NCBI RefSeq assembly: GCF_963853765.1
Contig: NC_088861.1
Location: 16,120,001 to 16,184,000, forward strand
Source of the DNA: Magallana gigas
Lineage: Eukaryota
DNA length: 64,000 nucleotides
Direction: 5' to 3'
Under the pieces are notes generated by a model. It was given only the letters and a program-made list of their open reading frames with translations, was not told the DNA's origin and ran no database searches. Shown one piece after another: positions 2,977 to 29,055 of the stretch. Each line of letters starts with the position of its first letter. Positions within the stretch are counted from its first letter, which is position 1. A program made the translations under genes and the position numbers.

Positions 2977-3194
2977 CATGCACGGATCCAGTAAATTTTC
3001 GGGGTGGAAGGGGGGAGGGGGGTCCGAGGAATATCTTTTTCGTGGTGGTGGTGGGGGGGGGGGGGGGGTTGAGACCTACATGTATATCACATCATTTTAC
3101 CACGTAAATTTAAGAAATTTGAATTTTCCAGGGAAGGGGGTAAGACTCTCTCCCGACCCCGAACCCGACCCCACTTGATAGAGATCCGCGCATG
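2977..3194. mobile_element. Small G-rich MITE-like element
   Basis: Terminal inverted repeats CATGCACGGATC ... GATCCGCGCATG around poly-G tracts; a matching end (GGATCCGCGCATG) recurs near 60348-60360. Confidence 0.55.
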
Positions 3195-3731: not shown

Positions 3732-6700
3732 CTATCTTAATCCCAAAAATTTTCGAATTCTCCTTCGTAGTCCAAATTTTTGCTTCTCTTTCTTTGAGGG
3801 AGTCTGGAAAAGAAAAAGGACCAAGTCATGAAACATGTATCAATTAACAAAAATCCTAATGGAATTGGAGAGGAAAAAACCCATCACCACCACCACCAAC
3901 AACAACAACCAAATTTATGCTATCTGTTTTAATGTAAATACCTCCATTTTGTCCTCTTCCTCGTCTTCATTTTCATCATCAACAATAGCCTTGGCACCAT
4001 CTAGGGATTCTGGGGGTGGTGAAGGTTCAGCTAATGCAATTGGATTAGATGAATGTACGTCTAAATAACTTGGACCCTGTGAATTAGGCAAAATATTTCA
4101 TATTAATGAATACTTTCCAGGTCTTTTCAATGTACACAAAGAAACAGAGTAAAACAAATACATGTTGAAATAAAGAAGCACATAATTCTTATCCCTCTTT
4201 TTCATATATATATAGATGTATACATTTCAATTGTATTTCATTTGGTGTCCAAATTAAAGTACAATTTTGGGACAATTTTCAAGGCAGACTGAATGAAAAA
4301 AGGAAATATGAAAGGGGAACATATATAGCAGGAACAATAACTCTACATAAAGAACTTATTATTTGGAACCAATAAGTACCTGGAGTGGAAGGTCGTCGCT
4401 TGATTTAAATGTGCTGATGTTGAACAGGAACAGCTTTCTCGGTACGAACTCCTCGTACGCCTCCTCCTCCAATAGTTTCAACTTTTTCCTTTCAGAGCTA
4501 GTTTGCTATAAAAAATAAAATCGAAAATTGTCTTTCATATTCCATGAATAGAATTTCCTTTATGATAGCGTATGTGGATTGGTCTGTAGTGTATAATTTG
4601 CTATAATATTAGTTATGCTGCATGGCCATGCATTTTCATATCATACATGTATTCTTACTAGTAGCTCGGCAAACACTAACTGCATTCTTTTCATCATCTT
4701 TTGTGTTTGTGTTTCCCGTTGAGCGTGAATTGTCTAGGGAAAAGGAACAATAAAAATAAAGATGCAACTGTGTTTGACTTTATGTGTATATTGCTATAAT
4801 CTGATATATATAATTATGTACATTAGCTTACCATAAGTTCTGCACAAACTTCACGCATTTTCTCCTTGATCTGCATAGTCCTTTGCTGAGCATGAAAAGT
4901 CTGAAGAAAGAAAGATTAAATGAAAATTACGACCGAACAACTGATAATATGAAAACATATACATGCAACGTATAAACTATTTGATTCAGTACCGTTGACT
5001 TTACTCGTACATTTATTTAAATGCACTCACCATTAGCTCTGCAAAAACTCTAGTCATGAGTTTCTTGGACGTCTTTATCTTTTGCTGAGAATGAAACATC
5101 TATTGGAAAGAGTAACGAAATTAACACTTAAAAATGTTTTAAAAGCATACATCATATTTTGATTGGAAGCATTTAAATCATAATTGATACTTGATTAAAA
5201 ATTTTGACTACATACATATGTATTTTATGAAATATAAGTACGCTTACCATTATCTCTGTTAAAACTGTACGCATTTGCTCCTTGGTCTTTTCAGCCTTTC
5301 GTTGTTCATGAAATGTCTGTTTAGAAATTAAAATAAAACATTATTAACTGGTTTCATATATGTATTGAGGCATTACACATAGGCGTCGGAACCGGGGAGG
5401 CTGGGGGGGGGGGGGGGCGGGGCTAAGCCCCCCCCCCCCACTTTTTTTGCAAAGTTAGGCCTAACCATCAGGGACATAGGATCATAGAGGGTTCAGCCCC
5501 CCTCCCCCCCCCACTTTTTCTCGGAGCAAAGATAGTTGTTCCTTAATTTACCTTGAAAGATTGAGAAGTTGGAATTATAAGCATAGTAGCCCCCCCCCCC
5601 CCCCACGGATTAGGAATTTCATGATTTTGGTGATTTGGGGGGGGGGGGATTGGTAGGTAAGATTTTTTTGGAAGTATAGGTACCCCCCCCCCCCCCCCCA
5701 CGGATTAGGATTTCCATGGTTTTGGAAATTAGTTTTTTTCCTCAATATCTCTGAGGATTAATCTAGCCCCCCCCCCCCTTTCAATTTGCTTCCGACGCCA
5801 GTGTTATAAAAACACCGTTTTAGCATTGTTTGATTGATTTATTGATTAAATGTAATATAGAAATGATATGTCAACTATTTTATATTTAACTGCAGTCTTT
5901 GCCTACCCTTAGCTCTGCAAAAACTTCACGCATTTGTCTTCTGTTAATTATCATTTTCTGTTCATCATGGAATGTCTGTAAAAATTGAAATCAATTTGTC
6001 TAAATACACGTGTGTGTATGTTCATTTCTTATAATCCCAATCTTGATTTTATTAATATTTTGTGTGTACAATAACTTACCATAAGCTCTTGAAAAACCTC
6101 ATGCATTTTTTCTTTGTTTTTCTTTATGTTCTGTTGAACGTGAAATGTCTGTAAAATCGAAATAAAATCAAGACTCTTTAAGATTATATCATACTTTATT
6201 AATATATCTATTAACAAATGAATTGAATTTTAAAATTTACAACAAATATGAATAGTATACCATAAGCTCTTCGAAAACTCCGATCATTTGTGCTTTGATT
6301 TTTTTGGTGTGCGACTCGGATTGATACTTCTGAAAAATTTATATAAATATGACAACAATGCTTTATACCTGCAGATTATGATAGTTGAAAATATTTAAAA
6401 TAGTGTAAAAGTTCTTACCAATAGTTCCTCCATTTCAACCACTCTCCTTTCTTTATTCTTCAGCAATTTCACTTGCATTGGTTGGTCCTGAAAATATGCA
6501 ATATGAAGCTAGATTATTAATTTTGTTTATAATTTATTTCATTCCTTCAGGGATCAATAGTAATAAAATTTGTTCAAAATTTGCACGAAACAGTATGATT
6601 AATCAAGATGAAACAATGTACATCTAAATAATATGAATAAACATGAAGTTTTAATTCCATTTTTAATAATTAAAAATACAATTCCACGTACTTGCACGAA

Positions 6701-7428
6701 TAGATCTTAAACGATTGTTATAGTTGTGCTATTAATAGTTGTTAACTCATAAAGATGTGTAATACCATGGGGGCTTTCCTTTGGAGAGGCAATCTAGCGA
6801 ATCTCGCGACCCAAGATGGCATGGATGCCTGATAAATAAAATTAAATACATTTGTCATTTTTTCATTCATTAATCTGCACGTTCAAAATTCTACATGGCA
6901 TTAATTAAGATTTAAGAGTTAGATATCTCAAAGCGTTCTTTATAATAACACAGTGTTAATATGAATGTTTCTGAAAATGAAATGTTTACCAATAAATCCC
7001 TCTGGACCTGCCCTCTGTTTCTCTTTTCGATTTGAGTTTGATTCTGCAGAAATATAAAAATTGAACTTACTAGTATCCATAAGTAAAACCATTACAGGAC
7101 CTTAAAATACGAGACGAATATGTTGTCATGGTGTAAATTTTGTATTTACTGCCACCCGGTAAATTCAAAATTTACAACATGACAATGTCACGCAATACGT
7201 TGAGAGACAAATACCAAATCACTGTTAGCGGGATGCATGCCTTTGTTCAGAGATATTAAAAAATTAAAACTTCGATTATCAAGGTGAAACTTAAAATTAG
7301 AAAACAATTCATCAATCGCTTAATGTATCGGATTGGTAAAAGCGTAATTTAATTTAGATCTTAACCACGTATACTTTATCTGGAGATATTTACAGTAAAA
7401 TAATCATACTTACATTCTTCTTCTCCAT
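3732..7428 (-). CDS. Copy A of an unrecognised 14-exon helical-repeat gene (340 aa)
   Basis: Exons in transcript order: 7428-7414, 7043-6990, 6828-6766, 6487-6419, 6329-6261, 6148-6080, 5975-5907, 5316-5248, 5099-5031, 4900-4832, 4733-4659, 4505-4380, 4076-3942, 3803-3732. All GT-AG, all lengths multiples of 3, no internal stop. MEKKN-NQTQIEKRNRGQVQRDLL-ASMPSWVARFARLPLQRKAPM-DQPMQVKLLKNKERRVVEMEELL-KYQSESHTKKIKAQMIGVFEELM-TFHVQQNIKKNKEKMHEVFQELM-TFHDEQKMIINRRQMREVFAELR-TFHEQRKAEKTKEQMRTVLTEIM-MFHSQQKIKTSKKLMTRVFAELM-TFHAQQRTMQIKEKMREVCAELM-TIHAQRETQTQKMMKRMQLVFAELL-QTSSERKKLKLLEEEAYEEFVPRKLFLFNISTFKSSDDLPLQ-GPSYLDVHSSNPIALAEPSPPPESLDGAKAIVDDENEDEEEDKME-TPSKKEKQKFGLRRRIRKFLGLR*. Confidence 0.85.
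5376..5803. mobile_element. 428-bp non-autonomous DNA transposon (MITE) with 3-bp TSD in intron 7 of copy A
   Basis: TIR-like ends CACATAGGCGTCGGAA ... TTCCGACGCCAGTG; TTA duplicated at 5373-5375 and 5804-5806; copies B and C show the empty site GAGGCATTATAAAAACAC. Confidence 0.9.
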
Positions 7429-7437
7429 CCTTCCTTT

Positions 7438-7510
7438 CGGTTGTAGCAACAACAATGATTATGGCGTCATAGATAACGATCGTCATTGTGACGTATGTAT
7501 GACGTAATAG
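7438..7510 (-). promoter_or_regulatory. Putative proximal promoter/5' region of copy A (RFX-like site plus CRE-like cluster)
   Basis: GTTGTAGCAAC, TGGCGTCA (7462-7469) and two TGACGTA just upstream of the ATG; block conserved in copies B, C and D. Confidence 0.4.
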
Positions 7511-7967
7511 AAAACGACTCTCTCTCTCTTCCATAGGTATGGGGCATAACGTAACACCGTACTCGTATATAACATTTGTCGCAGGTCCCTAAAATCAGCT
7601 TCAATATATAGCGGTGCTGCGGTTTTAATACATGTTCAATGCATTACTTAAGAAATATTAAGAAAAAAATTTCAATTACATTGTAAAAAGCCAAATCTAG
7701 CGCAGTTGCATAATATGTTACTTTGTCAACTTAATCGTCTGTAAATTGGAAACTGAATACAGATTTTGTGATTTTAATTTCAAAAATATTCAAAATTTCA
7801 ATTTCAATACAATAATGACATGATGTTCTTTTAGGTAAAATGTGAAAAAGAGCCACTGCGAATAATAAACAGTGTGTACTAAATCAGTTTCGAAATATAG
7901 CCCGCCATGCATCGCGATAGCCCAACTTTGAAAACACGTCGTCAAAATTGTGTAAAAGCGACTGTAT

Positions 7968-8631
7968 TTTGTGCAGGACAGTGTGTCGTATAAATTTGTG
8001 TTAGCGCGACTGTGCGTTGTGCAGAGTTGTGTTATAGCAAACTTGTGTTGTGTATGGCTTTGTTAAGGCTATAACGTGTTTTGAAGACTTATGTTTGCGC
8101 TATCGTGTGTTGTGCAGAGTTAAACTAGCGCAATCGTGTGCTGTGTAGGGTTTTGTTAGCATGACGGCCTGTCGTACAAAGTTGTGACAGCATGTTGTGC
8201 AGAGTTGTAACGCGACCATGTGTTGTGCAGAGTTGTGTTAGCGTCACCGCGTGTTGTGTATAGAGTTGTATTAGCGCGAAAGTGTGTTGTGCAGAGTTGT
8301 GTTATAGCGAACATGTGTTATACATGGTTGTGTTAACGCTATCACGCGTTTTGAAGATTTGTCTTAGCGCAACCGCGTGTGTTGTATACAGAGTAGTGGT
8401 AGCGCTATCGTGTGTTGTGCAGAGTTGTGTAAGCGCGACCATAAGTTGTGCAGAGTATATTGTTAGTGCGACAGTGTTTTTGTGCAGAGTTGTATTAGCG
8501 CAAATATGTGTTGTGCATGTAAAGAGTTGTGTTAGTGGGACCATGTGTTGTATGTAAAGAGTTGTGTTAGCGCGATCGCGTGTTGTGCAGAGTTGTGTTA
8601 GCACGACCATGTATTGTCCAGAGTTGTGTTG
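7968..8631. repeat. ~31-bp satellite array, consensus TGTGTTGTGCAGAGTTGTGTTAGCGCGACCA
   Basis: Directly visible degenerate tandem units between copies A and B. Confidence 0.9.
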
Positions 8632-8807: not shown

Positions 8808-11800
8808 CTATTTCAATCCTAGAAACTTTCTAATTCTTCTTCTCCATCCATTCTTTTTCTTCTCCAAATTATTTGATGGAATCTAAAGAACAAGAAAGAA
8901 TTCAGCCATGAATATACGTATTAATAAAGACTTCACAGAAAAAAAAAAATCGCCAGATGATAATACATATATATGAGAACAGTTCTAAAATAACTACGAT
9001 ATACATGTACCTCCATTTTCTCTTCGTCGTCGCCTTCGTTTTCATCATCAACAACGTAGCAGGCACCATCTAAGGACTCTGGGGGTAGTTCAAGTTCAGC
9101 TGATGCCACAAGGCTTGATAGGTCTGGATACCTCGGACCCTGCGAAGGCAGAATGTTTAATTTTTAGTACGTGTATATACTTTACAGGTTATGCAACTTC
9201 CATGTACATGTACATAAAGAAACACAGTAAAACCGATTAACTGTGAAAATGAAAAATTAAGCACTTTATCATATATAATAAGATGCATGCATTTAAAATA
9301 TATTTCAATCAATTTGTGACCAAATTAAAGTGAAGTTTTGAGACCATTTCCAAAGCAGATCCGCGGACTGAATGAAAAAGAAATTTGAAAAGGAGACATA
9401 TAGCAGGAACAATAACTCTGTATAAAGAACTTCTTATTTGACGTCATGCAGTTTGTAACTTTTTACCTGGAGTAGATGGTCATCATCGGTTTGCTTGAAA
9501 CTGATGATGTTGAACAGGAACAGCTTTCTCGGTACGAACTCCTCCTCCTCCAATAATTTCAACTTTTTCCTTTCAGTGTTAATTTGCTATAAAAAATAAA
9601 ATCGAAAATTGTATGTCATATTCCATGAATAAAATTTCCTTTATGATAGCGTATGTGAATTGGTCTTTATAGTATATAATTTGCTATAATATTAATTATG
9701 CTGCATGGCCATGCATTTTCATATCATACATGTATTCTTACTAGTAGCTCGTCAAACACTAACTGCATTCTTTTCATCATCTTTTCTGTTTGTGCTTCAC
9801 GTTGAGCGTGAATCGTCTAGGGAAAAGAAATAATAAATATAAACATGCAACTGTACATGTATTTGAATTTATGTGTATATTGTTATAATCAGATATATAT
9901 GTACATTAGCTTACCATAAGTTCTGCACAAACTTGACGCATTTTCTCTTTGATCTGCTTAGTCCTTTGCTGAGCATGATAAGTCTGGAAAAAAAATATTA
10001 AATGAAAATTGCGACTTAACAACTTATAACATGTAAACATACTTGTATTTCAAAGATGCAACGTATAACAAGTATTGTTGTAAACTATTTGAATCAGTTC
10101 TGTTGACTATACTCGTACATTTATTTAAATGCACTCACCATTAGCTCTGCAAAAACTCTAGTCATGAGTTTCTTGGACGTCCTCATCTTTTGCTGAGAAT
10201 GAAACATCTATTGGAAAAAGTTACGAAATTAACACTTAAAAATGCTTTAAAAGCATACATCATATGTTGATTGAAAGCATTTAAATCATAATTGATACTT
10301 GATTAAAATTTTTGACTACATACATATGTATTTCATGAAATATAAGTACGCTTACCATTATCTCTGTTAAAACTGTACGCATTTGCTCCTTGGTCTTTTC
10401 AGCCTTTCGTTGTTCTTGAAATGTCTGTTTAGAAATTAAAATAAATCATTAACTGGTTTCATATGTATTGAGGCATTATAAAAACACTGTTTTAGCATTG
10501 ATTGAATGATTGATTGATGAGATGTTATACAGAAACGATATGTCAATTATTTTTTGTTTTACTACAGTCTTTGCTAACCCTTAGCTCTGTAAAAACTTCA
10601 CGCATTAGTACTTTGTTCTTATGTATTTTCTGCTTATCATGAAATGTCTGTAAATTTTGAAATCCAATGTTTAAAATACACGTGCGTGTATTTTCATTTC
10701 TTATAATTCCAATCTTGATTTTCTTAATATTTTGTGTGTACAATAACTTACCATAAGCTCTTGAAGAACTTCATCCATTCTCTTTTTGTTTTTCTGGATG
10801 CATTGTTGAACGTGACATGTCTGTAAAATCGAAATAAAATCAAGACTTTTTAAGATTAGATCATACTTTATTAATATATCTATTAACAAATGAATTGAAT
10901 TTTAAAATTTACAACAAATATGGATAATATACCATAAGCTCTTCAAAAACTCGGGTCATTTGTGCTTTGATTTTTTTGGTCTGCGTCTCGGATTGATACT
11001 TCTGAAAAATTTATATAAATATGACAACAATGCTTTATACCTGCAGATTATGATAGTTTAAAATATTTATAATAGTGTAAAAGTTCTTACCAATAGTTCC
11101 TCCATTTCAACCACTCTCCTTCCTTTATTCTTCAGCAATTTCACTTGCATTGGTTGGTCCTGAAAATATGCAATATGAAGCTATATAGATTATTAATTTT
11201 GTCCATAATTTATTTCATTCCTTCAGAGATCAATAGTAAAAAAATGTGTTCAAAAATTGCACGAAACAGTATGATTAATTGAGATGAAACAATGTACATC
11301 TAAATAATATGAATAAACATGAAGTTTTAATTCCATGTTTAATAATTTGTCAATTATTTTTAAAAATTCAATTCCACGTACTTGCACAAATAGATCTAAA
11401 ACAATTGTTTTAGTTGTGCTAATAATAGTTAACTCATAAAGATGTGTAATACCATGGGGGCTTTCCTTTGGAGAGGGAATTTAGTGAACCTGGCGACCCA
11501 AGATGGCGTGGATAGCTGATAAATGAAATTGAATAAATTTTTCATTTTTTCATTCATTAATCTGCACATTCAAAATTCTACATGGCATTAATTAAGATTT
11601 AAGAGTTGGTGTTAGATATCTCAAAGCATTCTTTATAATAACACAGTGTTAATATGACTGTTTCTGAAAATGAAATGTTTACCAATAAATCCCTCTGGAC
11701 CTGCCCTCTGTTTCTCCTTTCGATTTGAGTTTGATTCTGCAGAAATAAAAAAATTGAACTTACTAGTATCCATAAGTATTACCATTACAGGAACTTTAAA

Positions 11801-12120
11801 TACGAGACGAATATGTTGTTATGTTGCATTGTAAACTTTGTATTTACTGCCATCCGGTAAATTCAAAATTTACAACATGACAATGTCACGCAATACGTTG
11901 AGAGACAAATACCAAATCACTGTTAGCTGGATGCATGCATTTGTTCAGAGAAAAAAAATTAAAACTTAGATTATCAAGGTGAAACTTAAAATTAGAAAAC
12001 AATTCATCAATCGCTTAATGTATCGGATTGGTAAAAGCGTAATTTAATTTAGACTTTAACCAAGTACACTTTATCTGGAGTTATTTACAGTAAAATAATC
12101 ATACTTACATTCTTCTCCAT
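8808..12120 (-). CDS. Copy B of the 14-exon helical-repeat gene (336 aa)
   Basis: Exons: 12120-12109, 11736-11683, 11515-11453, 11159-11091, 11001-10933, 10820-10752, 10647-10579, 10424-10356, 10207-10139, 9983-9915, 9816-9742, 9586-9467, 9139-9011, 8882-8808. All GT-AG, phase 0, open; ends IPSNNLEKKKNGWRRRIRKFLGLK*. Confidence 0.85.
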
Positions 12121-12200: not shown

Positions 12201-12494
12201 TTACATTGTAAAAAGGCAAACATCTAGCACAGTTTCATAATATGTTACTTTGTCAACTTAATCGTCTGTAAATTGGAAACTGAATACAGATTTTGTAATT
12301 TTAATTTCAAAAATATTCAAAATTTAAATTTCAATACGATAATGACATGATGTTCTTTCAGGTAAAATGTGAAAAACAGCCATTGCAAATAATAAACAGT
12401 GTGTACTAAATCAGTTTCGACATATAGCCCGCCATGCATTGCGGTAGCCCAACTTTGAAAACAGGCCGTCAAAATTGTGTAAAAGCGACTGTAT

Positions 12495-13147
12495 TTTGTG
12501 CAGTGTTGTGTTAGCAGGACAGTGTGTCGTATAAATTTGTGTTAGCGCGACTGTGCGTTGTGCAGAGTTGTGTAATAGCAAACATGTGTTGTGTATGGTT
12601 TTGTTAAGGCTATTACGTGTTTTGAAGACTTGTGTTTGCGCTATCGTGTGTTGTGCAGAGTTGAAGTAGCGCAATCGTGTGCTGTGCAGGGTTTTGTTAG
12701 CATGACGGCCTGTCGTAAAGAGTTGTGACGCGACCATGTGTTGTGCAGAGTTGTGTTAGCGTCACTGCGTGTTGTGTAGAGTTGTATTAGCGCGAAAGTG
12801 TGTTGTGCAGAGTTGTGTTATAGCGAACATGTGTTATACATGGTTGTGTTAACGCTATCACGCATTTTGAAGATTTGTCTTAGCGCAACCGCGTGTGTTG
12901 TATACAGAGTTGTGGTAGCGCTATCGTGTGTTGTGCAGAGTTGTGTAAGCGCGACCATGAGTTGTGCAGAGTATATTGTTAGTGCGACAGTGTTTTTGTG
13001 CAGAGTTGTATTAGCGCAAATATGTGTTGTGCATGTAAAGAGTTGTGTTAGTGGGACCATGTGTTGTATGTAAAGAGTTGTGTTAGCGCGATCGCGTGTT
13101 GTGCAGAGTTGTGTTAGCACGACCATGTATTGTCCAGAGTTGTGTTG
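12495..13147. repeat. ~31-bp satellite array, near-identical duplicate of 7968-8631 (offset 4516 bp)
   Basis: Same unit order. The ORF-track entries 8282-8557 and 12798-13073 differ at only two residues. Confidence 0.9.
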
Positions 13148-13323: not shown

Positions 13324-16300
13324 CTATTTCAATCCTAGAAACTTTCTAATTCTTCTTCTCCATCCATTCTTTTTCTTCTCCAAATTATTTGATGGAATCT
13401 AAAGAACAAGAAAGAATTCAGCCATGAATATACGTATTAATAAAGACTTCACAGAAAAAAAATTCGCCAGATGATAATACATATATATGAGAACAGTTCT
13501 AAAATAACTACATATACATGTACCTCCATTTTCTCTTCGTCGTCGCCTTCGTTTTCATCATCAACAACGTAGCAGGCACCATCTAAGGACTCTGGGGGTA
13601 GTTCAAGCTCTGCTGATGCCACAAGGCTTGATAGGTCTGGAAAACTCGGACCCTGCGAAGGTAGAATGTTTAATTTTTAGTACGGGTATATACTTTACAG
13701 GTTATGCAACTTCCATGTACATGTACATAAAGAAACACAGTAAAACGATTAAATGAAGAATAAGGCACAAAACTCTTTTCCCTCTTTGTCATATATGATA
13801 AGATGCATGCATTTAAAATATATTTCAATCAAATTGTGACCAAATTATAGTACAGTTTTGAGACAATTTTCAAAGCAGGAATTTGAAAGGGAAACATATA
13901 GCAGGAACAATAACTCTGCATAAAGAACTTTTTATTTGACGTCATGCAGTTTGTAACTTTTTACCTGGAGTAGATGGTCATCATCAGTTTGCTTGAAACT
14001 GATGATGTTGAACAGGAACAGCTTTCTCGGTACGAACTCCTCGTACGCCTCCTCCTCCAATAGTTTCAACTTTTTCCTTTCAGTGTTAGTTTGCTATAAA
14101 AAATAAAATCGAAAATTGTATGTCATATTCCATGAATAAAATTTCCTTTATGATAGCGTGTGTGAATTGGTCTATATAGTATATAATTTGCTATAATATT
14201 AATTATGCTGCATTGTCATGCATTTTCATATCATACATGTATTCTTACCAGTAGCTCGTCAAACACTAACTGCATCCTTTTCATCATCTTTTGTGTTTGT
14301 GTTTCCTGTTGAGCGTGAATTGTCTAGGGAAAAGAAATAATAAATATAAAAATGCAACTGTATTTGATTTTATGTGTATATTGTTATAATCAGATATATA
14401 TGTACATTAGCTTACCATAAGTTCTGCACAAACTTCACTCATTTTCTCTTTGATCTGCATAGTCCTTTGCTGAGCATGGAAAGTCTGAAGAAAGAAAGAT
14501 TAAATGAAAATTACGACTTAACAACTGATAATATGAAAACATATACTTGTATTTCAAAACATGCAACGTATAAACAATTTGATTCAGTACCGTTGACTTT
14601 ACTCGTACATTTATTTAAATGCACTCACCATTAGCTCTGCAAAAACTCTAGCCATGAGTTTCTTCGACGTCCTTATCTTTTGCTGAGAATGAAACATCTA
14701 TTGGAAAAAGTAATGATACACTTAAAAATGTTTTAAAAGCAAACATCATATGTTGATTGGAAGCATTTAGTAAAGTATAGTTTATTAGCTAAAAACCACA
14801 TGGTTTATAGGCATTGTATAAATACATGTAAATAAATAATCAATGTGAACAAATTTTTTGGCAGTACACATGCAGACACATCTGCCATTATGAGATATTA
14901 CCACAAATGTACAATGTAAATAATTACATAAAAAAAGAAAAGAAAAATGTACATATATGTATCTTATAATATTTATATTATCACATTAGGAGGATAATAT
15001 ACATATTAACTAAAGCAAATTATTTCTATACTCTGTGGCTATAAATCATAATTGATTCTTGATCAAAAATTTTGAAAATACATGTATTTCATAAAATATA
15101 AATAAGCTTACCATTATCTCTGTTAAAACTGTACGCATTTGCTCCTTAATCTTTTCAGCCTTTCGTTGTTCTTGAAATGTCTGTTTAGAAATTAAAATAA
15201 AACATTAACTGGTTTCATATGTATTGAGGCATTATAAAAACACTGTTTTAGCATTGATTGATTGATTGATTAGCTGTAATATAGAAACTATATGTCATTT
15301 TTTTTTTACTGTTGTCTTTGCTTACCCTTAACTCTGCAAAAAGTTCACGCATTTGTCTTCTGTGAATTTTTATTTTCTGCTTATCATGGAATGTCTGTAA
15401 AAATTGAAATAAATTGTTTACATACACGTGCGTGTATTTCATATCTTATAATCCCAATCTTGATTTTATTAATATTTTGTGTGTACAATAACTTACCATA
15501 AGCTCTTGAAGAACTTCATCCATTCTCCCTTTGTTTTTCTGGATGTTTTGTTGAACGTGAAATGTCTGTTAAATCGAAATAAAATCAAGACTCTTTAAGA
15601 TTATATCATACTTTATTAATTTATCTATTAACAAATAAATTGAATTTTAAAATTTACAACAAATATGAATGATATACCATAAGCTCTTCAAAAACTCCGA
15701 TCATTTGTACTTTTATTTTTTTGGTGTGCGTCTCGGATTGATAATTCTGAAAAATTTATATAAATATGACAACAATGCTTTATACCTGCAGATTATGATA
15801 GTTTAAAATATTTACAATAGTGAAAAAGTGCTTACCAATAGTTCCTCCATTTCAACCACTCTCCTTTCTTTATTCTTCAGCAATTTCACTTGCATTGGTT
15901 GGTCCTGAAAATATGCAATATGAAGCTAGATTATTAATTTTGTTTATAATTTATTTCATTCCTTCAGAGATCAATAGTAATAAAATTTGTTCAAAATTTG
16001 CACGAAACAGTATGATTAATTAAAATGAAACAATGTACATCTAAATAATATGAATAAACATGAAGTTTTAATTCCATGTTTAATAATTTGTCAATTATTT
16101 TTAAAAATTCAATTCCACTTACTTGCACAAATAGATCTAAAACAATTGTTTTAGTTGTGCTAATAATAGTTAACTCATAAAGATGTGTAATACCATGGGG
16201 GCTTTCCTTTGGAGAGGCAATTTAGCGAATTTCGCGACCCAAGATGGCATGGATACCTGATAAATGAAATTAAAGAATTTTGCATTTTTTCATTCATTAA

Positions 16301-16874
16301 TCTGCACATTCAAAATTCTACATGGCATTAATTAAAATTTAAGAGTTGGTGTTAGATATCTCAAAGCATTCTTTATAATAACACAGTGTTAATATGAATG
16401 TTTCTGAAAATGAAATGTTTACCAATAAATCCCTCTGGACCTGCCCTGGAGTTCGTCCTCTGTTTCTCCTTTCGATTCGAGTTTGATTCTGCAGAAATAA
16501 AAAAATGAAAACTTACTAGTATCCATAAGTATTACCATTACAGGAACTTAGAATACGAGACGAATATGTTGTCATGTTGTAAATTTTGTATTTACTGCCA
16601 TCCGGTAAATTCAAAATTTACAACATGACAATGTCACGCAATACGTTGAAAGACAAATACCAAATCACTGTTAGCGGGATGCATGCATTTGTTCAGAGAT
16701 ATTAAAAAATTAAAACTTCGATTATCAAGGTGAAACTTAAAATTAGAAAGCAATTCATCAATCGCTTAATGTATCGGATTGGTAAAAGGGTAATTTAATT
16801 CAGACTTTAACCGAGTACACTTTATTTGGAGTTATTTACAGTAAAATAATCATACTTACATTCTTCTTCTCCAT
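13324..16874 (-). CDS. Copy C of the 14-exon helical-repeat gene (344 aa)
   Basis: Exons: 16874-16860, 16488-16423, 16256-16194, 15904-15836, 15746-15678, 15565-15497, 15394-15326, 15180-15112, 14697-14629, 14484-14416, 14323-14249, 14093-13965, 13652-13524, 13398-13324. All GT-AG, phase 0, open. Confidence 0.85.
14768..15041. mobile_element. 274-bp AT-rich insertion specific to copy C intron 8
   Basis: Copies A and B read GCATTTAAATCATAATTG uninterrupted. The insert has imperfect inverted ends (TAG...AGTATAG / CTATACT...CTA). Confidence 0.6.
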
Positions 16875-17062: not shown

Positions 17063-17745
17063 TATATGTGTTAGTGTGTTAGTGCGACCGTTTATTGTGC
17101 GGAGTTGTGTTATAGCAAACATGTGTTGTGCATAGTTGTGTTAAGGCTATTACGTGTTTTGAAGACTTGTGTTTGCGCTATTGTGTGTTGTGCGGAGTTA
17201 AACTAGCGCAATCGTGTGCTGTGCAGGGTTTTGTTAGCATGACGACCTGTCGTAAAGAGTTGTGACAGCATGTTGTGCAGAGTTGTAGCGCGACCATGAA
17301 TTGTGCAGAGTTGTGTTAGCGTCACCGCGTGTTGTGCGGAGTTGTGTTAGTGCGAAAGTGTGTTGTGCAGAGTTGTATATAGTATAGCGAACATGTGTTA
17401 TACATGGTTGTGTTAGCGCTATCACGCGTTTTGAAGATTTGTCTAAGCGCGACCGTGTGTTGTGCAGAGTTGTGGTAGCGCTATCGTGTGTTGTGGCGAG
17501 TTGTGGTAGCGCAACCATGAGTTGTACAGAGTATTGTTAGCGCAACCGTGTGTTGTGCAGATGTGTGTAAGCGCGACAGGATTTTGTGCAGAGTTGCCAG
17601 TATTAGCGCGAACATATGTTGTCCAGAGTTGTGTTAGCGCGACCATGTATTGTCCAGAGTTGTGTTAGCGCGACCATGTATTGTCCAGAGTTGTGTTAGC
17701 GCGACGAGTGTTGTGCAGGGTTGTGTTATCGTGATCATGTGTTGG
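17063..17745. repeat. Third ~31-bp satellite array, upstream of copy C
   Basis: Same consensus, with consecutive identical units near 17640-17700. Confidence 0.9.
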
Positions 17746-19955: not shown

Positions 19956-20757
19956 ATGAGACAGCAACCAAAAGCTAGGGCTGTATCGCCCTCGGGGCTG
20001 ATATTTCTCTGTCTCAGTCCGTCGTCAAGGGGGTGTATTGCCCTCAAATTTAAAATAGCTAATTCCCAAATATCTCTGCTTTGAATTAAGACTAGTTGTG
20101 AAATAACGATATACTATCAAATATATAATACAAAGCATCACCTTACACGTCTGAATATTTTTATTAATTGCTGTGAAAAATGATAATTCAAAAATAGCGC
20201 CAAAGAATGATATGTATCTAAGAAAGGGGAGTAAACCAAACGACGGTTGTTTATTTAGAACAATAGCATGCTTTATTTAATATCAATCAACATTTAAATA
20301 ATAGAGGATATAGAGATTAATCTTAGAAAACCAGAGTTTAGATTGTAAAAAGTAATTGGTTCAAGTAATGGACGCGCTTATGAACGTTCTCAAAAGTATG
20401 GATTTTTATGAATGAAATTTAACAGGAAACTTACGAAATCTCAGTGAAAGACGTTACGAAGTTGCGTAGGATGGAAGTAAGTTGAAGTTTCTCTCTCGAT
20501 AATTTTCAATTCTGGAAGATAGTGCTTAATCTCAGACGACAGACTCCCTTCTACTGTATATTTCAAACGATGTTGGTTTGTCAACTAAGTCCGACAATCG
20601 CTCAGTTCTTAACACATAAAAAGGAAAAAAACGAACAAGTTTTGTAAATCCGAAAATTAATCCATAGCTTCTTCGTGATAAATTATATTCCTTATTTGGA
20701 ATTTGAATTTGAATAAAAGTATTTGATTTTAGATATATGATATAAACAACATCACGT

Positions 20758-22416: not shown

Positions 22417-25400
22417 CTATTTCAATCCAAGAAATCTTAACACTCTTTTCCTCAGTCCACCCTTTTTCGTCTTCTTTGAATGAGTCTAAAAAAGAAAGAA
22501 AGAGTCATGTATAAATGCATTGATGAAAACCTTCATGGATAAATTTTTTTTTTATAAAACGAATTTCCGTAAGATTAATGATTATTGTTATGCGGTAACT
22601 ACCTCCATTTTGTCCACTTCCTCGTCGTCATTTTCATCATCAACAACAGCCTTAGCATCTAGGGATTCTTGGGGTGGTGCAAGTTGGGATGATGCCACGG
22701 GGCTAGATAAGTGTGGAGAACTCGGCTCCTGCGAAGAAGGCAGAATATTTCATATTTTAAAAATACCTTCCATATATGTAATTTACATGTAGTACACAAA
22801 GAAACACAGTTAAACGAATATATAATTGTGAAATGAATAACCTCAAACTCTTTTACATATAGATTTACATTTCAGATGTATTTCAATCAATCAGTTTGTG
22901 ACCAAATTATAGTACAGTGTTGAGACAATTTTCAAAGCAGACTGAATGAAAAAGAAATATGAAGGGGGAGCATAGCAGAAACAAGCAGGAACAATAACTC
23001 TGGATCTAGAACTTCTTATTTGGAACCAGTATGTACCTGGACTAGATGGTCGTCGCTTGATTTAAATGTGCTGATGTTGAACAAGAACAGTTTTCTTGGT
23101 ACAAACTCCTCCTCCTCCAAAAGTTTTAACTTTTTCTTTTCGGAGTTAGTTTGCTAAAAATCAAATTAAAAAAAAGTGTCATTCACATTTCCATGAATAA
23201 AAATGTATGATAGCACATGTAAATTAATTTAAATTATACAATTAGCTAATATATGCTGTCTGGCCATATATTTACATATATACATGTACATCTATATATA
23301 TACTTACCAATAGCTCGGCAAACACAACATCATTATCTCCTTGCTCTTCTGTGTTTTCCGTTGAGCGTGAAACGTCTAGAGAAAAATTCCAATAAATATA
23401 GACTCTTGATTGTTAATATGTGTTGTGTATTCTTGAAATTAAATTCATGCATATGCAACGTATACTATAGTATGTTTAATCATTATTTACATCGCTATGT
23501 ACATTTATTTACCATTAGTTCTGCAAAAATGTCACGCATTCTCTCACTGATCTGTTTAGTTCTTTGCAGAGCATGAAAAGTCTGAAAAAAAATTAATGAA
23601 ATAAAAACTAGGACTTTATAAAATAATTTATGAAAAAATTGTTTTCTCAGCAGGTCCCGGGGTCATAAAAGTTAGACGAGCTCAATTTTGATCTCAGTCT
23701 CTTTTTAGACGGTGGCTATTTATAGCCACTGTCTATTGCTACGGTCCTGACCGGAAGGGTATTTCTCACGGGGACCCTAGCGGATAACGAACGATAACTC
23801 TGTTAGGTACATGTATGCAGTGTTTTATCTACGTGTCGATTTCAGTATGAGAACTCATTTTAATCTTATCAGATATTTTAAGCATTATAGCTGCTAATTA
23901 TTTTGTACATACATTTAAATAATGTATGAAATTGGGTTTTATTTTAAATGAGCCGTTACCCTATCTGCTTACGCGGTATTAATAATATTAATTAAGGCTC
24001 AAACTGCCAGTTTTGACGTTTAACTCTGTATCAGGACTGCATATAAACTATATCACTGCGATAATTGGTCAAGAGATCTCACAATAATTGCTTCTTGTTT
24101 TTTATGATATAAATAATTGTCAGAAACACACTATTTAAACTGGTTTGCCATTTCATATTTCAGCAATTATGCTTCATCGATAAATTCAGCCATTTTCAAC
24201 GCATTAGTTTTAGTTGAGCAGTATATTTTTTGTTGTTGAAGCTTATTCCAAAGAATTCACAACAGATACTCACAATGAATATTACATAAATTACATTTTA
24301 TTGAACTTCAACCGATCAATGGCACAGTTTCTTCTACAAGTGTGCACTAGTGTGTTTTCAAACACACAAAAACTTTAAATTAACGATACAAATGTGTTAA
24401 ATTTTCGACTGACCTGTGATTTACAATGTACCTTATTTCGTACCTCACTCAGTCTGTAGAAACATAAATTTTATTACAGGCACCTCAATATTCATCAGAC
24501 AATATTTACTGCAGATGTTGACGCTTTACTTGCTGCTGACTTTCTCTCAAACACGCTAATCGACGTCGGATTGTAAAATTCACGTGCAAATCGAGTCCCC
24601 ATTTTAAATGTTTATAAACTACATTTTACGATGTTTCAAAGATTTTTAGTTCAGATTTTTTTTTACATATGCTGTAAAACGTCTTGTGGATTTCACGGCG
24701 TGTCAGCTCGTCTATCTCTAATTTGCAGCAAATGCTAGCTTTTTTGTGAGAAAAAACATGCGATATTCCATATACATTTATGGTACATAATGAACGGTAA
24801 TGTAAGAGAGCATCTTTTCTTTGGTTTGGGGGCATTTTTTCACTAACAGATAACATTATTTACATATGTACGTAAACATCGCCCCGTTTGTTCTCAAATG
24901 ATTCTTAATTCGCGAGTACAACTCTATTATGAACTTTCTTCGACATTTGTTTCCAAGTGTTAGCATCATTTTGTCAACATGCATTTACAAATAGGCGGGC
25001 CTATATAAATGCGCCAGTTTGTTGCGACTCACAATTGAAATACACACCGGTTAGAAAGTGTCATCACTTAACACAATGCTTGAAGGCAAAAAAATGTGCT
25101 TCATAGATGACTGTAGAATTCTGCTGAGCTACAGAAATATAGCTTTCCGAAAATATTGCCGGGATTTGCGAACCCTAGATCTATTGTTTAGTACATGCAA
25201 AGAATAAAATCAAAGAAGATAGGCGAATAAGGCGTGTAAAATGCCCATATGAGGAATGATTAGATACGGCAAAATTAAAATATCATTAAATCTGATACTT
25301 TTTTAAAAAATAATTAAAAACAATGTATATTTAACGTAACATCGGATTGTAATCTTTAAATATTTTAAATATACTTGCAATATATTGATTTAAACTGGCG

Positions 25401-28400
25401 TATGCGTGTCAAAACCTCCTAATCGTGTAATTTTTATAACTTCAATTCATTTTCTTTCATAGAGTGGGTCTGAGCTCAATATTTTTTTTTTTACAGTCTA
25501 AATGTGGTTTAATGGAATTTAATAAACCGATTGGACTCAACAAAAATGTGGAGAGATGACCCACTACAGTTCAAAAATGTCATTTTGTAGCTCAACAATT
25601 GAAAGTTTTAGAAATATAATACAAGTCCGAAAATTCGTGGTCATAGTCTCATATAGCATTTAAACAACGCACTTTGTTGTGAATGAAATGGCTCACCATG
25701 GTTAGAGCACCATCCATTAGGAAACTTTATAGAACTTGGGTTCGATACCACCAAAACTTAAAAATTTATTATTTTTTTCTTATCTTTTTGAAATATTTCA
25801 AACTGAATATAGTTAGAAATTACCATTTTGTAAACTTGCATAATAACATATCAAATATATTTAATTGAAAAAATGCTAAATTTGAAATTGTATTTTACAA
25901 CTAAACCAAAATGGCAGTTGCGCCATCTTATCCCCCCATCTTCTTTATATACACAGCTGTACGGTCAGAAAAACGTGCGTTCAGCTTGAATTTTGTTTGT
26001 TTGGTGTTTTTAAAAACTTATTTTGTATAATTAATCAATATTTGTTGTAAGTTTACTAGAAAAGTTTAATGTAGCAAGTAATTTATGCGTGTTAAAGTGT
26101 ACTGAGAAGCGATAAAATATACATGTGACTTTCCCGAATTCATTCAAATAGTTTGAATAAATCTATAGCTAAATACAATAGAACAAATGTTTAAAACGTT
26201 GATTAATGAAACTGCCGCGACCGAATGTTGTATGATATTTTTTAAAATTTTCATTCACTTTCGTTGTGAGCAAATGGAAATAATCCCCTAAAGTCGAAGA
26301 TAAAATATTGATTTACTCTTCTGTTTCATGATGACGTGCATTCCAAAAGCAATGCCAGTTTTATCAAACAGGTTCTTGTAAACCCATTCCGTTTTTTTTT
26401 ACACCTTAATGTATTAACTGACTATGAGGGAAAAAAAAGCAAATGTGATGATCCACAAGACTGCAACTTTTTCCCCGTGAAGAAAATGAGGGAAAATGCT
26501 GTCGAGAGGGACAATTAATATACTATATGTATGCCCAAATAGTTAGTAAAAATAAGTATTTTATCATACCAAAGCTTTATTTGTTCTCGTTACGTTGAGA
26601 AATCTACAATATATTTAAAGCACAATAGTCCAATCCACACTTTTCAAAAGTTGTTCCCATTTGCGGGGCCAACCCAAAGGTCAAAAAGGAATAAACCAAA
26701 ATTCCCCTTCTTCAAACAATCAAATATTTGGGCGTACTGTGATGAAATCGCTTTGGATTTGATTTATTCATTCAATATGTGGTGGCAACCATTCAAACGG
26801 GGTTTTAATGTCAACTGATATAGATACAAACATATTGATACAAAATATATATACAAACTTCTATACGACAAAGACTACTGTGATAAATCTTTGGGCCTTT
26901 CCCAAAAGATGACGACCAAGAGACACAGCATTTGTAAAGTGTAGAGTGAGATCACAGCTACGATTTCCACAGAATTATCCATGTAGGAAACTCACGACTA
27001 GTTGTGCGAGTAAGCGTTAAGTATTAGTACATGAATGCGATACTGGTCGCGGTTTTCGACAAAAAAATAATTATCATACATCACTCATTGTTACATGTAA
27101 TATGCCACTTTCAAACGACGCCACCGTCTAACAGTACTTTCAGTACTTTGATTTACAAAAGAAATATATGGTGGAAAAGTGAGACTGAAATCAAAAGTGA
27201 TCGAGCTCGTCTAACTTTTATGGCCCCGCGGGGCCAGGTCTATAAAACCATTTATTGACCTCATCAAAAGGCTATAATTATGTATTATTAATATTCGTCC
27301 CTTAAAATATATATGTATTTGCTGAATTTGAAGATTTTCAAAATATATAAATAGTAATATATCATTTAATATTTTAATATATACCATTAGCTCTTCAAAC
27401 ACTCCAATCATCTGTTGTTTGTACTTTTTAACCTGCTGCTGAGCATGAAATGTCTGGAAAATAAACAGATTTGATTACATGGTTTTTTAGGGAATCATAT
27501 ACCGGTAATAGTGTAAATAAATGAATATACATCATTGTAAAAGATCTTACCAATAATTCCTTCATAACAATCCCTCGCCTTTCTTTTTCTTTTTGAAATT
27601 CCATAAATTTTCGTTCCTTTTCACTGTGAACTTTTTTTTGTTTGTCCTGAAAGTATGAAATATGGTTTTTTTTTTTGAAGAGACTCGTATATTTTTTTTT
27701 ATTTATGAAACAAAATATAATTTGAGATTAACACCGTGTCATTTACCTTGCTTTCATCTTGTGATATAAAGTTTTAATTTTTGTCATTTTTTTTTACGTA
27801 CCAGTAGCTCCTTTAAAACTTGACGCATGCGTTCTCTGTATACATCTCTCTTATCTCCATGGTTGTCATTCTGTTGATCCCAAGAATAAAAGGGTGATTT
27901 CAATGTGAAATTTCAAAACACGCATGAATTCAATTAAATGCATATGATTTTTGAAACTTTTGAAAATCTTAGTACTTTGATTTCTTCTCCCCGGTCTACG
28001 GCGACTAGGCTTGCTCGAGAATCTTGTTGAGTCTGAAATTGATGTGCACAATTTTTATATAATTATAAATAAATATAGATTTATAATAATTTGACAATTG
28101 TAACGGTCATAGGAAGATATATATATTTGTTTTATTTGGATGTGTTTATTATAAAATAACTCATTCAGATACGTACCATGGGAGCTTTGCTTTGTAGTGG
28201 CGATATGCCGTCTCTCTTGGCCTAAGATGGCATGAAGACCTAAAAAAACATTTTTTTTTTCATTGAATAAATCATCTCTGGACGTTTTACTTGAAATAAA
28301 GATTTAAGATTTGAAGATAATTATCAAGTTTCACACGCATACAGTTCTGTGTTTGTATATGCTATATACATGTACATATATGTATATTGAGTAGATTTAA

Positions 28401-29055
28401 TTTTGAAACGTTCATAGTTAATTAAAAGAAACTTACGTTCAGATTAGAATGTCTCTCATGAATGGTCTTTAGATTTCCTGACTTGTTCACATAAGCCACT
28501 AAGTCCTTCTGCAGAAATATTCAAACATAGATTGTGGTTTAATCTGATTTTTGGGGGTGGGGTGGGGTGTTAAACATCTCACTATGCACTTGTGATAATG
28601 CAGTTGTAAAATAATAGCAAGATAGAAATAATCCGTTGTCTGTGGTATACTTAAAGTTAGCGTCATTTTCTATGATATGTATGATTTTTATAATTATGTA
28701 CGTTCGATTTTTAATATGAAGTGTTTACCAATAAATCCCTCTGGACCTGCTCAACAGTCCGTCTTCTCGTTCTCATCTCGCTCTGAGTTTGATTCTGAAG
28801 AAAAGAAAAAAAATCGACTTAAATAAGGAACTAACCAAAAAGATCTAAAGACGAATACCAATGTGGGAAATCCGTCGGAATGCACGGAGATATTAAAATA
28901 TTGAAACTTTGATAATTCAGTTAAAATTTGAAATAACACAACAACCAAAAGCTTATATCGGAGTGATAAAAGAGCAATTCATTCTAAATTATACAAAAGT
29001 GACATTCATTTGTAGTTAATTACGGTAAAATAATCATACTTACATTCTTCTCCAT
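22417..29055 (-). pseudogene. Copy D: diverged, probably disabled paralogue of the helical-repeat gene
   Basis: Exons: 29055-29044 (MEKN), 28794-28729, 28239-28177 (TGG>TAG at 28222-28224), possible 28032-27976, 27870-27802, 27646-27551, 27453-27385, [3.6-kb insertion], 23581-23513, 23375-23308 (68 nt, 1-bp deletion), 23153-23037, 22728-22603, 22485-22417 (THSKKTKKGGLRKRVLRFLGLK*). Confidence 0.75.
23654..27234. mobile_element. ~3.6-kb TIR element, PIF/Harbinger-like by TSD, no intact transposase ORF
   Basis: TIRs GTCCCGGGGTCATAAAAGTTAGACGAGCTC ... GAGCTCGTCTAACTTTTATGGCCCCGCGGGGC; CAG at 23651-23653 and 27235-27237 (a CWG-type 3-bp TSD is known for some Harbingers). Confidence 0.7.

Follow-up and report, generated by a model that had tools for sequence, protein, structure and literature searches.

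Symmetric repeat exons and apparent single-exon skipping in a tandem gene family of the oyster Magallana gigas

We analyzed a stretch of 64,000 nucleotides (nt) from the oyster Magallana gigas (NC_088861.1, positions 16,120,001 to 16,184,000 of the forward strand), called the window below, with positions counted from its first letter. Near its beginning lies gene A, on the minus strand (coding 7428-3732), which we assembled from open segments between AG and GT. Gene A has 14 exons and encodes a 340-residue protein. The coding lengths of its exons are 15, 54, 63, 7x69, 75, 126, 135, and 72 nt, and all 13 introns lie between codons (phase 0), with an AG acceptor and a GT donor throughout. An earlier reading of this DNA (the original prediction) had claimed that all 13 introns are in phase 0, and this was borne out in gene A and is the same in the layout of the related genes B, C, and E. 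Its two positions, 3803 and 7414, mark where the last exon of gene A starts and where the first one ends. The exons are as follows.

7414 to 7428, minus strand: exon 1, coding part (MEKKN), from the joint 7043>7414
6990 to 7043, minus strand: exon 2, 54 nt, phase 0-0, from the gene model and joints in RNA contigs
6766 to 6828, minus strand: exon 3, 63 nt, phase 0-0, from the gene model and joints in RNA contigs
6419 to 6487, minus strand: exon 4, 69 nt, the first repeat, which is degenerate and ends EELL, from the gene model, RNA contigs, and repeat comparison
6261 to 6329, minus strand: exon 5, a 69-nt repeat whose homologous exon is missing in Logan transcript L001, from the gene model and RNA contigs
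6080 to 6148, minus strand: exon 6, a 69-nt TFH repeat, from the gene model and RNA contigs
5907 to 5975, minus strand: exon 7, a 69-nt TFH repeat that ends AGG, with donor gtaggc; its counterparts in genes B and C are the cassette of the RefSeq X2 models
5248 to 5316, minus strand: exon 8, a 69-nt TFH repeat, from the gene model and RNA contigs
5031 to 5099, minus strand: exon 9, a 69-nt repeat, bypassed by the joint 4900>5248 in run X1
4832 to 4900, minus strand: exon 10, a 69-nt TFH repeat, from the gene model and RNA contigs
4659 to 4733, minus strand: exon 11, 75 nt, the last repeat, from the gene model and RNA contigs
4380 to 4505, minus strand: exon 12, 126 nt, which carries FVPRKLFLFNI, the best-conserved motif in the family
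3942 to 4076, minus strand: exon 13, 135 nt, acidic and predicted to be disordered, from the gene model and structure prediction
3732 to 3803, minus strand: exon 14, coding part and stop codon, with a predicted basic C-terminal helix

Gene A is transcribed as modeled. All 13 of its junctions were found as joints in RNA-derived contigs from four public runs, X1 to X4 (assembled contigs; one run recorded as RNA, three guessed to be RNA), and the gene is therefore transcribed as drawn. The 5' untranslated region reaches at least 7529 (RNA contig 7457-7529). In three of the four runs, the exon 8 allele (window 5248-5253) ends ...GAGCTTATG (TELM), not ...GAGATAATG (TEIM). The TELM allele matches the older protein P0001, which has 93% protein identity to gene A, and from these comparisons the alleles of gene A appear to differ substantially.

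Gene A belongs to a family of five. A translated search of the window with the gene A protein found two close tandem copies, B and C, and a diverged copy, D, all on the minus strand.

8808 to 12120, minus strand: gene B, 14 exons, all phase 0, from exact mapping of P0006
10579 to 10647, minus strand: exon 7 of gene B, with the weak donor gttagc; missing from the RefSeq model X2 (P0006)
13324 to 16874, minus strand: gene C, 14 exons, all phase 0; P0003 is the RefSeq model X1 (344 residues) and P0005 is X2 (321 residues)
15326 to 15394, minus strand: exon 7 of gene C, present in X1 and missing from X2
22420 to 29055, minus strand: gene D, a diverged paralogue that has fewer TFH repeats and whose acceptors are all in phase 0, from translated search and P0025

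P0003, P0005, and P0006 map exon by exon to C and B with 100% identity. The internal exons of gene B are 54, 63, 7x69, 75, 120, and 129 nt, and those of gene C are 66, 63, 7x69, 75, 129, and 129 nt, in both genes with canonical AG/GT sites and in phase 0. The sizes that had been predicted for A to C (54/66, 63, 7x69, 75, 120-129, and 129-135 nt) are exact. A profile search placed all five members in this genome on chromosome C9. The fifth, gene E (locus L013, C9:14.606 Mb; G000:C9:14605000-14611500), is 1.5 Mb away on the opposite strand and has the same 14-exon, 7x69+75 layout as A to C. In gene D, every recognizable exon start follows an AG at a codon boundary, and the gene is disrupted in this assembly at three points, by a TAG in frame (28224-28222), a frameshift that affects the third TFH exon (23375-23304), and a gap of about 3.8 kb between its exons at 27385 and 23581. 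Its RefSeq product is only 144 residues (P0025); other assemblies encode intact proteins of 317-321 residues (P0008, P0010-P0013).

Exons 4 to 11 are all copies of a single unit of 23 residues, whose consensus is T-F-H-x-Q-Q ... K-E-K-M-R-E-V-F-A-E-L-M. In genes A, B, C, and E, each of these eight exons (69 or 75 nt) encodes one repeat of 23 or 25 residues, and every one is bounded at the identical point of the repeat (...ELM / TFH...). Repeat exons at equal positions in A, B, and C have a mean nucleotide identity of 93%, in marked contrast to those at differing positions (mean 55%, maximum 75%), and therefore the exon array is older than the gene duplications and has not been homogenized since. 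Within gene A, exons 5-10 are mutually 54-71% identical, and exon 4 is only 33-46% identical to these. The repeat count is equal in A, B, C, E, and the C. angulata orthologue P0004.

The repeat array is predicted to form a long helix. Genes A, B, and C encode proteins of about 340 residues whose center is predicted to be one long alpha-helix of eight 23-25-residue repeats. AlphaFold2 models residues 60-247 of the X1 product of gene C (roughly exons 4-11) as one continuous helix, with a predicted local distance difference test score (pLDDT) of 70-88, and the ends as disordered except for a short basic C-terminal helix. Hydrophobic residues are conserved at columns 15, 18, 19, and 22 of the repeat and at column 2 of the next repeat, a short seam that runs across the exon junction. 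The main peak of the hydrophobicity power spectrum is at 23.2 residues, with others at 2.3, 3.26, 7.8, and 3.8. There was no peak at 3.5 residues in this spectrum, as a heptad coiled coil would give; there is a short a-d seam (columns 15, 18, and 22, then 2 of the next repeat) once per repeat.

The uniform phase is most simply accounted for by exon duplication. If the 12 symmetric internal exons were independent, the chance expectation would be (1/3)^12, an estimate that does not apply because eight of the exons copy one unit. If the repeat introns are treated as a single event, about seven independent introns remain, and the probability that all are in phase 0 is about 1%, a figure that takes about half of animal introns to be in phase 0. 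Uniform phase 0 is still notable at about 1%, and it fits a gene built wholly from phase-0 modules. Exon duplication classically gives rise to arrays in which each symmetric exon encodes one repeat.

We favor an origin of the array by exon duplication with inherited phase 0, followed by limited skipping of single exons, and give this explanation a probability of about 75%. On this account, a 69-nt exon with a phase-0 intron on either side would have been duplicated in tandem to build the array, earlier than the duplication of the genes, and the uniform phase 0 would have been inherited rather than selected afresh 13 times. Each exon is cut at the same position of the repeat, and therefore removal of any repeat exon would re-create the ELM/TFH junction, so that each would become, as a by-product, a legal in-frame cassette. 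Individual exons appear at times, or under certain conditions, to be left out by the spliceosome (exon 7 of genes B and C, exon 9, and perhaps exon 5), and each omission would shorten the helix by 23 residues, or about 3.4 nm. That the pattern might simply record exon duplication had been the fallback of the original prediction and is now the best-supported explanation. Its statement that any subset of internal exons can be removed in frame also holds, given the symmetric lengths and phases of the exons.

Single-exon skipping appears to occur in the family and is already annotated for genes B and C. The RefSeq model X2 of gene C (P0005, 321 residues) differs from X1 (P0003, 344 residues) in lacking exactly exon 7 (15394-15326), and the X2 model of gene B (P0006, 313 residues) lacks the homologous exon 7 (10647-10579). 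Both inclusion and skipping of exon 7 are thus on record for these two genes at the level of annotation. A contig of run X1 contains the joint 4900>5248, which links exon 10 to exon 8 and omits exon 9; among the joints listed, this is the only skip seen at gene A. Exon 4 is joined to exon 6 in a C-like transcript, the Logan contig L001 (SRR5451721, 1087 nt).

L001 has several other unusual features. Its exon 8 contains a stop codon and a 5-nt deletion, and its first 68 nt (L001:1-68) form a different, non-coding 5' exon with homology to window 20512-20435. A non-coding exon with the donor gtaagt lies there, 3.6 kb upstream of gene C (window 20435-20512, minus strand). In L001 this 5' exon is spliced straight to exon 2, bypassing the ATG-bearing exon 1, and the protein would begin with the methionine of MPSW in exon 3, like the older model P0001. 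Comparison of L001:606-693 with window 14324-14237 indicates that exon 11 is extended by 12 nt via a downstream GT donor, with LRIH inserted in frame; the normal exon 11 donor appears to be altered in the L001 allele.

The contigs run through consecutive exons. Ordinary junctions between consecutive exons were present in each of the four runs, with contigs that read through exons 10-9-8-7-6 (X2) and 9-8-7-6-5 (X4), and the E-type Logan transcript L002 has exons 6-14 uninterrupted. Searches of protein collections returned full-length forms, forms lacking exon 7, the model P0021, and fragments; searches aimed at fragments added the exon-5-less transcript, the intron-retaining P0026, and again the old model P0021. 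P0021 (174 residues, lacking exons 3, 4, 5, 7, and 8) was discounted as transcript evidence, as it is a gene prediction from 2012. No molecule with two or more skips was found among the joints listed, the Logan transcripts, or the remaining protein records, a comparison in which the short contigs have little power.

The original prediction had gone further, raising the possibility of 256-fold combinatorial skipping. In a fuller form of this idea, the eight repeat exons would be regulated cassettes, chosen independently, that yield many length and sequence variants of a helical rod. The architecture would allow this, since the internal exons are all symmetric and the repeat exons begin and end at one position of the repeat. 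Three of them (5, 7, and 9) are each skipped in some source, exon 7 in two paralogues alike, and in animals generally skipping is enriched for frame-preserving exons, a general property of transcriptomes (PMC6142364). The k-mer depth of the skip contig in X1 (769) was similar to that of the inclusion contigs (882.7); contig depth, however, cannot be used as a ratio or to rank parts of the gene. For the same reason, the low depth over exons 6-7 in X1 was rejected as a sign of mass skipping: exons 4 and 8-11 collect contigs from the paralogues. Against independent choice, no transcript or protein record pairs two separate skips once P0021 is set aside, every run contains the consecutive-exon path, and each repeat position has retained its own sequence across four paralogues, which speaks against interchangeable repeats. 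We consider regulated combinatorial use improbable. What stands of the skipping claim is its single-exon part (exon 7 in the X2 models of B and C, the joint of exon 10 to exon 8, and L001); the combinatorial mechanism is unsupported.

A related proposal is that four intact paralogues undergo regulated omission of several repeat exons, specific to tissues or individuals, so that the length of the rod varies in steps of 23 residues. If this were true, there would be dozens of variants and a second bindin-like system of diversity, on a helix instead of a lectin. We think that this, too, has only a slim chance of being correct.

Apparent skipping might instead not be splicing at all, and reflect alleles or copies in other oysters that lack the exon, splicing noise, or degenerate copies, in which case each gene would in effect make a single protein. 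L001 looks like a decaying copy, with its missing exon 5, premature stop, 5-nt deletion, and different 5' exon. Gene D is broken in this assembly, allelic differences are strong (P0001 being only 93% identical to A), and the exon-9-skip joint was seen in one run only. However, RefSeq maps both X1 and X2 to this genome, in which exon 7 exists. In addition, introns beside neighboring repeats share about 10 nt at most, which disfavors exact loss of an exon by unequal crossing-over, and all five genomic copies examined, like the C. angulata orthologue, retain their full set of repeat exons. We regard this explanation as unlikely, if somewhat less so than combinatorial use.

Several points weigh against the explanation that we favor, exon duplication with limited single-exon skipping. 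Skipping of exon 7 is known here from the RefSeq X2 models and not from the reads behind them. The contig that skips exon 9 may derive from A, B, C, E, or another allele, because exons 8-10 are nearly identical between paralogues (93-99%; exons 8 and 9 at least 96%; exons 4 and 8-11 altogether 91-100%). L001 may be the transcript of a degenerate copy whose genomic sequence has no exon 5. Proportions of inclusion are not derivable from assembled contigs, and the junction evidence consists of the joints listed. Finally, the model of a single helix, with a predicted template modeling score (pTM) of 0.24, is based on an alignment of 13 sequences.

Selection on the family appears to be weak. Between paralogues, exons and introns have diverged about equally (6-7% and 5-6%, respectively). 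Exons 3, 6, and 11 diverge faster than introns in some pairs (p 0.003-0.025), and faster evolution of exons than of introns was not found overall in this test of divergence. Pairwise ratios of nonsynonymous to synonymous substitution rates (dN/dS) over exons 4-11 were 0.26-0.75, values that indicate purifying selection, though weak, and give no overall sign of diversifying selection.

The family appears to be restricted to oysters. An exhaustive HMMER search of 1.84 billion representative proteins found no relatives outside Crassostrea/Magallana, returning only two oyster clusters and some fragments. No Pfam family matched above threshold; the matches to Rtt106_N and to a poxvirus Bcl-2-like family were below threshold and attributed to chance. 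The ESM Atlas gave no usable match by features, and its structure matches were all below a template modeling (TM) score of 0.3. No literature was found on the LOC numbers or on the two SRR accessions. By these searches, the five genes make up an uncharacterized family that is probably confined to oysters. RefSeq automatically named the X1 product of gene C CCDC30-like. Both are predicted long alpha-helical proteins, but the oyster family has no Pfam family at threshold and no relatives outside oysters, and the name appears to reflect composition only.

The genes and their surroundings contain other repeated sequences. A 31-bp minisatellite of 14-21 copies (consensus TGTTGTGCAGAGTTGTGTTAGC...) occurs at window 8193-8630, 12485-13146, and 17271-17744, in each case about 0.4-0.8 kb upstream of exon 1 of gene A, B, or C, respectively, and must therefore have been copied along with the gene unit. 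It explains the positive peaks in GC skew. Intron 7 of gene A contains a 450-bp insertion rich in poly-G/poly-C (window 5340-5810) that is absent from B and C; a similar poly-G/C sequence is also found at 3000-3180. Intron 1 of gene A contains an element (window 7130-7310) at which contig depth was very high and loose ends were numerous in each of the four runs. The intron 7 insertion and the intron 1 element look like dispersed repeats or transposon fragments.

The gene E transcript L002 is a mosaic. Its repeats best match A or C, depending on the exon, and its exons 13-14 best match D (85-89%), which suggests, at the level of sequence, a past exchange between paralogues.

Part of what we describe is already known: the architecture is familiar, and skipping of exon 7 is in public annotation. 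The analysis documents an uncharacterized, oyster-only gene family that clearly illustrates how a modular protein can be built by duplication of a single symmetric exon and can later be trimmed in frame. If skipping were both regulated and combinatorial, the family would be a second system of isoform diversity in oysters.

The system with which the family had been compared is oyster sperm bindin, which carries 1-5 F-lectin repeats, the number being set by alternative splicing and recombination, with positive selection (PMC5712786). The statement in the original prediction about splicing and recombination in bindin agrees with this source, but the analogy drawn from it did not hold. There are likenesses: bindin is also from Crassostrea gigas and also has tandem repeats, and there are hints of exchange in the helix family (the A-like repeats and D-like tail of gene E). 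In contrast to bindin, the helix family has no F-lectin domain (no Pfam match above the cut-off) and no evident signal peptide (by eye). Each repeat here is one 69-nt exon, whereas in bindin the lectin domain is split. The dN/dS values are below 1 and not above it, the genomic number of repeats does not vary, and the skips seen were all single ones. The helix family shares none of the testable defining features of bindin.

The closer comparison is with arrays in which each exon encodes one repeat. Examples are the 54-bp exons of fibrillar collagens, the repeat exons of nebulin and titin, and the variable exons of CD44. As in these genes, the repeat in the oyster family is the exon, the introns share one phase, the frame is kept, and some exons appear to behave as cassettes. 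The oyster family differs in that its repeat is a 23-residue helical unit that belongs to no database family, in its restriction to Crassostrea/Magallana, and in the fixed number of repeats among its paralogues. We conclude that the architecture of the family is real but ordinary.

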